Shown here piece by piece: positions 15,458 to 18,790 of a stretch of DNA of 64,000 bases. The position numbers and the translations under genes were made by a program. Under the pieces are notes generated by a model. That model made no database searches. It had not been told where the DNA came from and saw nothing but the letters and a program-made list of their open reading frames with translations. Every line of letters begins with the position of its first letter. Positions within the stretch are counted from its first letter, which is position 1. The DNA is from Guillardia theta CCMP2712 (lineage: Eukaryota > Protista > Cryptophyta): the NCBI RefSeq assembly GCF_000315625.1, contig NW_005434611.1, positions 312,045-376,044 of the forward strand, in the 5' to 3' direction.

Positions 15458-18400
15458 ATGATTCCCCTCGGAAGACTTGCTTTTCTCTTCGCCATCTTGT
15501 TTTCGACGGTGGGAAGAACAACGGAGTCGGGCATACAGCCTATGTATCTTCGCGGGGGTGGCTTGTTCGGAAAGCGAGTAGGCGGGCGATACGGAGGCAC
15601 GGTGTTGCCTTCGGCACAGATCGAAGAGATGAAGGCAAGCGAACAAGCTCAGACTGCCGCTGAACCGGCAGGAAAGGCGGAGGAGGACAAGAGGGGCCTG
15701 ACAGCGAACGATGCGGTAGCGGAGCACGAGAGATCTGAAGGAGATCAGCAGGGAAGCGAGAAGAAGGTAGCAAACGAATCCCCATCGGAATCGTCTGCCA
15801 GCATCCGCTCCGTCGGGGATGCAAAGAACACCAGCGACGTTTCTCCGCAGAAGGTGAATGTGGTTGAGAAGGAGGCGGGGGCGAGGAGGAGGTAGAAGAG
15901 GAGGAGGAGGGGGAGGAGGTGGTGGTGGTGGTGGTCGAGGAGGAGGAGGAGTGAGAAAGTGGGGCAGGAATTCAACATGTCCTCGTCGAATCTTTTCGGC
16001 AGTGATCTCCATGAGAATTTCAAGTACATCTACATTGTATCCGACAGGTCAAAATCTCCTTGCCCAGCTAGCCAGTGACCTTGATTCCTGCAGCACCGGG
16101 TTTACAGCTTCACACGCACTCACCAGCGTCATGGTGGGCTGGTCGGCATTCCAGTCGCTCTTGTAACAAGTTGGTCCTCTAGGCTCAGTTCGACTCGCTC
16201 GCTGTCGACTGGAACGGGCAAGACAACAAGGCGAAGGAGAAGAGCGGGGGAGTGCCGGTCAGCCCTGCCGTCTCCTTCCCCTTGCACTTCCTGAGACTCT
16301 CAGCAGGAGGTCAGGACGCAAATGTTCAGCAACGTCAAGGACCTCGGAAGGCTCGACAGGATCGTTGCGCTGGCAGCGAAGATGGTAAGGGAGGAGGGGG
16401 AGAGAGGAGGAGGGAGATGGGACAAGGAGGATTACAGCACGAGAAGTAGAAGCAGAGAAGAAAGTTCAAGTTAACGATTTGAGTAGAGTGCATTCATTGT
16501 CTTCACGCTGGTAGACCCAGCACTTCATACCAGGCTCTTGAACCAGTGCCGCTTCTTCAAGGTCCTCCTCCTCCTCCCTCGACCTCCTCCTCCTCCTCCT
16601 CCTCCTCCTCCTCCTCCTCCTCCTCCTCCTCCTCCTCCTCCTCCTCCTCCATTGCGGCTTTTGTTGAACCTCAAATCCTGTAGGTCCCTCATCAAGACTT
16701 GCTCGGACCTCTTGTGCGCCACCTCTCTTCCTTCCTCGAGAAGGAGCCAACAGGTGAGGGCTACAGCAAGAAGATGGAGGAGGAGGAGGAGGAGGAGGAG
16801 GAGGAGGAGGAGGAGGAGGAGGAGGAGGAGAAATCTTATCTTCATAATCAGGGCTGCCAAGAGGGTCTGTTGGGACCAAGAGGAAGCCGCTCAGCGACAA
16901 GTACTTCAAGGTAGCGACCTCTAGCAGTCTTGTATGCTGATGGGGTACAACAGCGAGTAGAGGCTGTGGAGTTCACGATCAAGCAGGACGACGGCGCACA
17001 GGTGAGAAGCAGCAGCAGCAGGAGGAGGAGGAGGAAAGATGGAGCTCGGGAGGGGAGAAAGCTGAAGGTCAAGGCAGTGCCGAAACCTCCAAAAGGCGGA
17101 CGTGATTCTTCTCGGAGTGTCGCGCAGGCAAGAAGTAGCTAACGTTCTTCCTCCTCGCTGACTTTCTTTCCCCTTGTGCAGCTCAAAGACTCCTCTGTCT
17201 ATGTACCTCGCCCAGCAGTTCGGATACAAGGTGAGACCATCCGTTTCCTCGACCTCGCGCTCTGCATGCTAAGCGCCCGCCTCTTCTCCTTACATCGCCT
17301 CCTCGAATTCCTGCCATCCTATCTCACTCTCGTTTTCTTCCCTACTCCTGCTCTCCGTCCCTCCCTCTCTCCCTCTCTTCCTCCCTCCCTCCCCTTTCAT
17401 TCACGCAGGTCGCCAACGTGCCTCTGGTTCTCAACATTCAGCCGCCCTCTGAGATCTTCGAGGTCTAGAGCTTCCCTGAGCTCTCAGCTGTCACAACCTG
17501 TCCAGGTGGACCCCAGGAGAGTCTTCGGGCTGATCATCCAGCCGCAGTACCTGAGGCGGATCCGTACTCGACGGCTGGCAGGGACAGGGGTGGACACAGA
17601 GACCATCGGCAAGAGCATGGGGAGCTTCGACTACAGGTGGGGAGCCAGCTGGGGACTGACTCTGAGCTGACTCGATCCTCTGCCAGCAACATCAAGTACA
17701 TCCAGGAGGAGCTCAAGTGGGCTCGTGACTTGTATGCTGCTCACCCCGAGTGGTCCGTGGTGGACGTGACAGGACGAGCGGTGGAGGAGAACGCAGCGAT
17801 CATTGCCGAGCTGATGCCGGGGAAGCCGACGCCAGTAGAAGCTGCTCTGCATGCGCTGGACTGCAACTTCTTCATCCTGGAGCCGAGCAAGAAGTCGGTT
17901 GAGTTTCCAATCGTGTTTGCGAGCGACGGCTTCCTGCAAGCGACCGGCTACTCGAGGGAGGAGATCATTGGCAAGAGCGTCTTCATGCTGCACGGGCCCA
18001 ACACCGAGCGAGAGGTCATCACCAAGGTGCGGGAGCATCTGCGGGAAGGGAAGGAGGGACACTTTGAAATCCTCAACTATCGCAAGGACGGCTCGACCTT
18101 CAACAAGGACGTTCACCTGAGCCCCGTCCGCAACTTCGAAGGGGAAGTAGCCTTCATCTTCTGCACACAGGTAGAGCTAGAGCCCCTCGCTCCTGGCTTC
18201 AACCCCACCAGGAAGCCCGACGGGGCGGCGGCTCAGCCCACGGAGGAGGACGGAGACTTCAGGAGGGACCGGGTGGACAAGGAGAAGACGTCGGAGATCC
18301 TGAGGAGCGTACACCACCGGGGCTGGATCTCAGTGAGTATCTCCGATGCCTCCGTCCCCGGCATGCCCATCGTCTTCGCCTCCGAGGGCTTCTTCAAGAT

Positions 18401-18790
18401 GACCGGATACGAGCCGGCGGAAATCCTGGGGCACTCGCTGGAGAAGCTCTACGGGGCCGACTCTGACCCAACCACCGTCGCCATGATCCGAGAGGCGATG
18501 GAGACCCACCAGGCCGTCAGCACGTGCATCCTCAACTACCGCAAGGACGGGAGGAGCTTCTGGAACCACCTCAGCCTCCAGCCAGTTAGCGACTCGTCGG
18601 GCTCCCTCAGATACTACGTGGCTACCCAGGTGCTTCAAAATTCTCGCTATCATCCTCCCTTCCCGTTCTTGACCCTGTCCGGCAGTACACGGGAACGAGC
18701 GGGGTCGGCAATCTTGTTCGCGACTGCGGAGCAACATTTCCCTCAGGGCTGCAGACACACGCGTCCATCACTCCCTTCCTCCCGACCTGA
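15458..18790 (+). CDS. Pyruvate,phosphate dikinase regulatory protein (PDRP/PSRP, DUF299 kinase-pyrophosphorylase) fused to two C-terminal LOV-like PAS domains; N-terminal signal peptide; about 15 exons
   Basis: Spliced: KYIYIVSD|STGFTA..AFIVFTLVDP..DLLGPLV..LSDKYFK|RVEAVEFTIKQDDG..ADVILLGVSR|SSKTPLSMYLAQQFGYK|VANVPLV..VFGLIIQPQYLRRIRTRRL..Y|SNIKYIQEELKWARDLY..WSVVDVTGRAVEENAAII. The same exon continues into two PAS domains (PIVFASDGFLQATGYSREEIIG..NYRKDG..TQ and PIVFASEGFFKMTGY..NYRKDGRSFWN..TQ). Confidence 0.92.

Follow-up and report, generated by a model that had tools for sequence, protein, structure and literature searches.

Cysteine-less LOV-derived domains in a dikinase regulatory protein of the cryptophyte Guillardia theta

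Introduction

What becomes of a light sensor that has lost the residues by which it senses light? The question is raised by a gene of Guillardia theta CCMP2712 that occupies positions 15458-18790 (+ strand) of a stretch of 64,000 nucleotides of contig NW_005434611.1 (positions 312,045 to 376,044), the whole of which is called here the window. The gene encodes a protein of 750 amino acids, P0001, that begins with a signal-peptide-like leader and continues with a PDRP catalytic domain (PF03618), a short junction, a first LOV-like domain (D1), a linker, a second LOV-like domain (D2) and a conserved tail. PDRP is the regulatory protein of pyruvate, phosphate dikinase (PPDK). It carries out the ADP-dependent phosphorylation and the Pi-dependent dephosphorylation of the threonine that adjoins the catalytic histidine of PPDK. 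In plants it inactivates PPDK in darkness and reactivates it in light, and the input of the light/dark signal has been argued to be indirect.

Are D1 and D2 a direct input of light? I argue from their residues that they probably are not, and that they are more likely light-blind regulatory or assembly modules of a PDRP specific to cryptophytes, D1 being the candidate for the one that transmits.

Loss of residues for LOV photochemistry

The alpha/beta fold of both domains is that of a LOV-type PAS domain. The PAS_9 profile matches P0001 with 119-123 bits (cut-off 27), and a HMMER search of the PDB pairs D2 (residues 615-716; 18324-18629, +) with Chlamydomonas Phot-LOV1 (1n9l) at an E value of 8e-25 and D1 (residues 459-564; 17856-18173, +) with LOV structures at about 1e-21. 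When residues 446-750 are modelled with AlphaFold2, two PAS folds emerge, with pLDDT of 74-88 (74-87 in D1), and Foldseek lays one of them, D2 to judge by the identity, upon 1n9l with a root-mean-square deviation of 0.7-1.0 A, a TM score of 0.91-0.96 and 43-44% identity. To phototropin LOV domains in general D2 is 43-45% identical, and nothing else in the 87-Mb genome matches a canonical LOV1 query as well as D2 does.

The chemistry is another matter. Key columns were read from an alignment of 241 LOV-type domains found as search matches, 218 of them ordinary LOV domains; residues are numbered as in CrLOV1, with AsLOV2 numbers in parentheses. Where the canonical motif reads GxNCRFLQG, D1 has GKSVFMLHG and D2 has GHSLEKLYG. 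A preliminary description of the sequence had read the codons at 17970-17993 and 18429-18452 (both +) as GKSVFMLH and GHSLEKLY, and so they are, standing opposite GHNCRFLQ of 1n9l in the HMMER alignment. The adduct cysteine, C57 (450), is Val in D1 and Leu in D2. N56 (449) is Ser in both domains, R58 (451) is Phe in D1 and Glu in D2, F59 is Met and Lys, respectively, and Q61 (454) is His and Tyr. N99 (492) has become Lys in D1 and is Asn still in D2, while R74 (467), N89 (482) and Q120 (513) survive in both. Among the 218 ordinary domains, invariance is 96-99% at N56, R58, N89 and Q120 and 83-84% at Q61, R74 and N99 (R74 in 182/218, N89 in 216/218, the Cys itself in 180/218). The alignments also bear out that PIVFAS.GF..TGY, NYRKDG and the terminal TQ persist in both domains and FWN in D2 only.

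How much of a flavin site does this leave? The arginines and N449 are contacts of the flavin, and the N, R and Q of the E-alpha helix hold its ribityl-phosphate. I scored seven polar contacts of AsLOV2: N449, R451, Q454, R467, N482, N492 and Q513. Hydrogen bonds to the flavin come from Q454, N482, N492 and Q513 (10.64898/2026.10.27.762334). D1 keeps three of the seven (R467, N482, Q513) and D2 four (R467, N482, N492, Q513), so that the loss of several flavin contacts, claimed at the outset from the motif, is real: its N, R and Q are replaced in both domains. By the definition of Yee et al. 2015 (PMC4682037), natural LOV domains without the cysteine, termed LOV*, have nine or more of the 10 other conserved residues; they bind flavin. 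The filter speaks of "the other 10" residues but names nine: YtvA G59, N61, R63, F64, L65, Q66, N94, N104 and Q123. D1 retains four of these nine (G, L, N94, Q123) and D2 five (G, L, N94, N104, Q123). With 4/9 and 5/9 residues and no Cys, the two domains fall outside LOV and LOV* alike, though the fold is kept.

Both the adduct Cys and the N, R and Q of E-alpha being lost, D1 and D2 would be unable to run the 450-to-390 nm LOV photocycle; judged by residues, that photocycle is excluded and flavin binding of any sort is unlikely. Could a cysteine elsewhere stand in for the missing one? Two candidates were rejected. A Cys at the G511 position in the D1 pocket varies among five orthologs (C/A/C/A/A), and the conserved Cys within STC(I/V)L of D2 is taken to face outward on its strand.

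Nor is this a peculiarity of one protein. A word search, an exhaustive search by HMMER through 1.84 billion representative proteins and a local domain scan brought to light 17 proteins that combine a PDRP with LOV-like parts, and not one of the 17 has the adduct Cys (NCRF). The D1 motif of the orthologs is GKSVFMLHG, GQSPTILHG, GKSPTVLHG, GRSPWMLHG, GKPPWVLHG or, in Baffinella, GRNPRFLHG, with Pro occupying the Cys position in most; the D2 motif is GHSLEKLYG, GHSLEMLYG, GHSLD(L/M)LYG, GHNLLMLRG or GKTIDFLMG. Other flavin contacts fare no better. The equivalent of R58 is F/T/W/R in D1 orthologs and E/D/L in D2 orthologs, and that of R74 is R/W/Q/S in D1 and R/S/E/H/N/K/Q in D2. The preliminary description had cautioned against assuming a classical photocycle and had asked whether related algae retain the Cys. 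Its caution was sound, since neither D1, D2 nor any ortholog or paralog has the residue, the 17 fusions and the paralogs of the genome included.

An error in sequencing or assembly at the motif codons, or a gene model joined wrongly, would do away with the whole problem, and sequencing error had been named beforehand as what would undo the claim. None was seen. P0001 is a protein from the MMETSP transcriptomes, assembled independently of the genome (the gene is thus expressed), and when threaded, spliced, onto the window it is identical at 750/750 residues, with consistent introns. A relative 96% identical to it has the same motifs, and related motifs are found in other genera. It is scarcely imaginable that an error is to blame.

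Selection on D1 and D2

If the domains no longer see light, are they doing anything at all? They might be what is left, functionless and in decay, of a fusion that was once a photoreceptor. The photochemical residues have after all been lost, and in two paralogous clades of the family, B and C, the middle domains are more degenerate still. Decay, however, leaves marks that are not found here. Against the 96%-identical relative (P0002, encoded on the cDNA-like contig L023), the ratio of nonsynonymous to synonymous change (dN/dS, by the method of Nei and Gojobori) is 0.02 for D1 and 0.04 for D2, close to the 0.013 of the PDRP domain. It is 0 for the junction (7 synonymous changes, 0 non-synonymous) and 0 for the C-terminal tail (16 synonymous, 0 non-synonymous), and it reaches 0.09, the highest value downstream of the PDRP domain, in the linker between D1 and D2. 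Comparison across cryptophyte genera gives 61-73% identity for the D1-D2 region, and 47% with Baffinella. The fold is intact, and no PDRP locus of the genome is without domains of this kind. Purifying selection nearly as strong as that on the catalytic domain argues that D1 and D2 are working parts of the protein, and it contradicts decay, which I regard as highly improbable.

Can the domains still hold a flavin?

If D1 and D2 are under selection, what is being selected? At 21 pocket-lining positions, chosen from knowledge of the AsLOV2 and CrLOV1 structures and compared in only five full orthologs, D1 has a within-family identity of 0.65, as against 0.59 in the rest of the domain; for D2 the figures are 0.46 and 0.62. 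The pattern of D1 is like that of ordinary LOV domains (pocket 0.64, rest 0.53). D1 has an invariant set of residues in its pocket: His at the position of Q454, Lys at that of N492, and the retained Asn482 and Gln513. The set is invariant in clade A and recurs unchanged in the D1 of a paralog, C20. In D2 of the same five orthologs, the equivalent of N482 is N/C/A/M and that of R467 is R/S/E/K/Q. This small sample is suggestive of a D1 pocket that has been rebuilt and is under selection and of a D2 pocket that has been relaxed.

The size of that sample, and the manner in which the positions were chosen, are the first of several points that weigh against regarding the domains as blind. D2 of Guillardia retains the equivalents of R74, N89, N99 and Q120. 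LOV domains mutated at the Arg that contacts phosphate hold riboflavin, to go by PDB titles (miniSOG R57Q, miniSOG with riboflavin). BAT-LOV*, which like most D1 orthologs has Pro where the Cys would be, can be reconstituted with flavin (PMC4682037), and the Baffinella D1 motif, GRNPRFLHG, retains 7/9 of the LOV* residues. Finally, the anatomy, the residue losses, the selection, the distribution and the existence of a PPDK with the regulatory Thr-Ser-His site are shown here, but that no flavin is bound, that the coupling is allosteric and which domain senses are inferred.

One may build on these points the idea that D1, D2 or both bind FMN, riboflavin or FAD and use it to signal despite the missing Cys, either through photoreduction, which yields the neutral semiquinone, or through redox change, in the manner of LOV*. 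The protein would then be a regulator of PPDK under the control of light or redox state. Cys-less LOV domains are capable of signalling by photoreduction (PMC4682037), the LOV fold is intact, and, of the D1 and D2 domains compared, only D2 of Baffinella lacks the signalling Gln. But a domain with four or five of the listed LOV* residues is far from a published filter of at least nine. N449, R451 and Q454 are gone from both domains, and N492 is Lys throughout D1. In D2, N482 is not conserved among orthologs, so contact with flavin is not what selection keeps there. I therefore think it unlikely that either domain holds a flavin and signals with it.

A model for D1 and D2

I propose instead that D1 and D2, the C-terminal half of a PDRP specific to cryptophytes, are PAS domains that would descend from true, flavin-binding LOV domains, and that after the loss of the Cys and of the N, R and Q, FMN would most probably no longer be held. 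The preliminary description had thought of modules for another ligand, for redox or for dimerisation, and the residues agree with it so far. The likeliest role for the domains is that of light-blind regulatory or assembly modules, which would set the balance between the two activities of the enzyme on PPDK, that of the ADP-dependent kinase and that of the Pi-dependent phosphotransferase. The route would be the junction, PGKPTPVEAALHA, 13 residues (446-458; 17817-17855, +) that lead from the C-terminus of PDRP into D1, at its A'alpha helix and first strand. The junction is helical in the AlphaFold2 model and invariant in 8/8 aligned orthologs. In LOV proteins whose effector is N-terminal, A'alpha carries the signal. 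Here the C-terminus of PDRP joins the A'alpha of D1 with no variable spacer between them, and this direct junction is one ground for favouring D1 and D2 as modules that set PDRP activity. D1, with its rebuilt pocket of His, Asn, Lys and Gln, would be the candidate for the sensing or transmitting unit. D2, whose pocket drifts, would more likely be a structural unit or a site of contact between proteins. A homodimer prediction for two copies of the D1-D2-tail segment scored 0.00; run without controls, it weighs neither way on dimerisation.

What might D1 sense, if it senses? A bolder proposal, and one I would call doubtful, is that the fusion feeds a signal directly into the PPDK switch: the rebuilt pocket of D1 would bind a small molecule, a metabolite or a derivative of flavin, and through the junction flip PDRP between kinase and phosphotransferase. 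D1 of Baffinella, with its near-canonical motif, may remain a sensor by flavin photoreduction or redox change. If that were so of Baffinella, it would possess a natural light- or redox-gated PDRP.

PPDK and its leader

A PDRP calls for a PPDK with a regulatory threonine next to its catalytic histidine, and the same organism has one. The gene, on C236, encodes PPDK_N and PEP-utilizers_C domains, with the regulatory Thr-Ser-His in GGMTSHAAVVARGWGK. At its N-terminus (L010, about 1264-1480) is a hydrophobic leader that ends in VLHLRGG, right before the mature enzyme. P0001 starts in a similar fashion. Its N-terminal targeting region (15458-15562, +) has a hydrophobic, signal-peptide-like start, residues 1 to about 22, called by eye from the sequence with no predictor, and then Y-L-R-G-G-G at residues 30-35 (15545-15562). 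After the leader, [LMI]RGG occurs in 10/16 of the fusion proteins, with all paralog clades represented, and LAGG occupies that place in one more; of 84 other PDRPs, none has [LMI]RGG. The likeness between the two leaders is compatible with a shared compartment, and [L/M/I]RGG may be a signal for presequence processing or sorting common to PPDK and PDRP. LRGG is also the C-terminal sequence of ubiquitin. A search of the literature found no paper that links LRGG with Guillardia.

Gene structure and protein architecture

The gene has 15 exons, as placed by threading P0001: 15458-15853, 15968-16047, 16094-16133, 16183-16257, 16307-16384, 16487-16561, 16684-16753, 16852-16910, 16954-17001, 17078-17127, 17182-17230, 17409-17462, 17506-17636, 17687-18629 and 18686-18787, all on the + strand. 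The stop codon, TGA (18788-18790, +), comes directly after the last. The region from 17850 to 18629 falls within exon 14 of the 15 (17687-18629), and both LOV-like motifs are in the frame of that exon. One intron (17128-17181) is GC-AG, the remaining 13 being GT-AG. It interrupts the P-loop of PDRP (GVSR|SSKTP, between 17127 and 17182), with the result that family scans made exon by exon pick up only fragments: PF03618 scores 26.7 bits at the locus in a scan of the whole genome and 261.9 bits (cut-off 23.5) on the spliced protein. Searches used P0001, which is identical to the spliced gene model, as their query; exons were joined only for the dN/dS count. Tri- and tetranucleotide repeats lie in the introns, (GAG)23 at 15883-15951, (TCC)29 at 16563-16650, (GGA)18 at 16776-16830 and (CTCC)10 at 17353-17393, and give rise to long pseudo-ORFs of poly-Pro, poly-Glu, poly-Arg and poly-Gly.

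The PDRP catalytic domain (kinase/pyrophosphorylase) takes up residues 153-441, spread over 13 exons (16028-17804, +). Its match to PF03618 extends over profile positions 1-255 of 256, and NF003742 matches with 247.7 bits (cut-off 225). On the full-length match and the P-loop GVSRSSKTP, P0001 belongs among the PDRPs; it has the N-terminal motif SDSTGFTA as well. The linker between D1 and D2 (residues 565-614; 18174-18323, +) is a disordered stretch followed by a helix that runs into D2, with pLDDT below 50 for residues 123-169 of the model and the helix at 148-167.

The last exon with its stop (18686-18790, +) contributes a tail of 34 residues, YTGTSGVGNLVRD..., and is matched by tblastn at 100% to residues 716-750 of P0001. 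The tail is disordered in the AlphaFold2 model and conserved among orthologs, and no J-alpha helix is predicted after D2 in that model (residues 446-750). The beginning of the tail, YTGTSGVGNLVRD, bears a loose resemblance to the regulatory loop of PPDK, GGMTSHAAVVARG, in its Thr, Ser, Arg and the Gly that follows. The match is very short, and the matching Ser is not conserved in orthologs. That the tail acts as a pseudosubstrate is conceivable.

Distribution and origin

Every fusion with a named source comes from a cryptophyte: Rhodomonas, Teleaulax and Baffinella. The genome of Guillardia contains three PDRP loci, C63 (the gene described here), C87 and C20, all with Cys-less LOV-derived tails, and a PDRP standing alone was not seen. 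In a tree of domains, the three paralog clades have their C-terminal LOV-like domains together, parted from ordinary LOV domains by a branch with support of 100/100. This fits a single old fusion followed by gene duplication. D1 falls beside LOV1 of the plant protein TWIN LOV 1, a placement that the program flags as possible long-branch attraction and from which no origin is concluded. The near-canonical GRNPRFLHG of Baffinella suggests that the ancestor of D1 was a true LOV domain.

The canonical LOV1 query finds a single match with GRNCRFLQG in the genome, and at least eight LOV-like matches without the Cys. The single canonical match is in L017 (C36:508388-511534), at about 1369-1735, and is split by an intron; by its motif, it is probably the gene of a genuine blue-light receptor. 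At least six other Cys-less LOV-like PAS domains are in other genes, L015, L016, L018, L019, L021 and L022 (on C38, C139, C42, C16, C66 and C53), with motifs that include GKSLSILQG, SSRWDFFAG, GQPWTILCG, GKTLSIIQG and GRSLDVFCG. Cys-less modules derived from LOV appear to be a general toolkit of cryptophytes.

Relation to known systems and significance

How new is all this? The nearest familiar protein is phototropin, whose LOV1 and LOV2 (1n9l, Avena LOV2) share with D1 and D2 the fold, the topology, the arrangement as a tandem pair, PIVFAS.GF..TGY, NYRKDG and the terminal Gln, as well as FWN with D2 only. P0001 differs in its lack of the adduct Cys, N449, R451 and Q454 (with N492 turned to Lys in D1 besides), of a Ser/Thr kinase and of a predicted J-alpha, and in having its effector N-terminal to the sensor. 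It is no fragment of a phototropin: neither PF00069 nor PF07714, the protein kinase families looked for, has a match in P0001, and the green-algal phototropins that are the nearest matches outside the fusions all have a kinase domain. Aureochromes too have the effector before the LOV domain, and a signal would likewise go through A'alpha, but they are stramenopile proteins with a bZIP effector and a single canonical FMN-binding LOV domain that has the Cys.

Loss of the cysteine has precedents. BAT-LOV* of haloarchaea has a LOV fold without Cys and, like the D1 orthologs, Pro in its place; LOV* domains differ in having kept their flavin and nine or more of the 10 other residues (PMC4682037); of the nine listed, D1 has kept four and D2 five. 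Variants from marine protists have Leu in place of Cys, as D2 has, and a homeobox, bZIP or EF-hand module as fusion partner (Coesel et al. 2021, PMC8017926); these, like D2, are LOV-type domains of eukaryotic plankton, and a PDRP, dikinase or pyrophosphorylase partner is not mentioned in PMC8017926. TWIN LOV 1/PLP is also a tandem pair whose first domain is without Cys (Gly in 30 sequences of the alignment), but its second LOV is canonical and it has no enzymatic partner. From the other side, ordinary PDRPs (those of plant chloroplasts and PpsR of E. coli) share the full-length PF03618 catalytic domain and are about 270-430 residues long, with no sensor domain, whereas P0001 adds about 300 residues of LOV-derived sequence and a tail. 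The literature search returned no paper that joins LOV with PDRP or a dikinase regulatory protein, and a review of algal photoreceptors is likewise silent. What is new is the design, a fusion of PDRP with LOV-derived domains; the principle of a Cys-less LOV is known (PMC4682037, PMC8017926, TWIN LOV 1).

For those who annotate genomes there is a caution here: a match to "LOV domain" in a cryptophyte protein does not make it a photoreceptor. For those who study LOV domains there is a natural test case, of how they are put to new use once photochemistry is lost, of what a rebuilt LOV pocket binds, and of how PAS domains control a bifunctional kinase/phosphotransferase. For the cryptophytes, the presence of LOV-derived domains in all PDRPs of the lineage suggests that an ancestor coupled the PPDK switch directly to a blue-light sensor, and that the sensor was later rewired.

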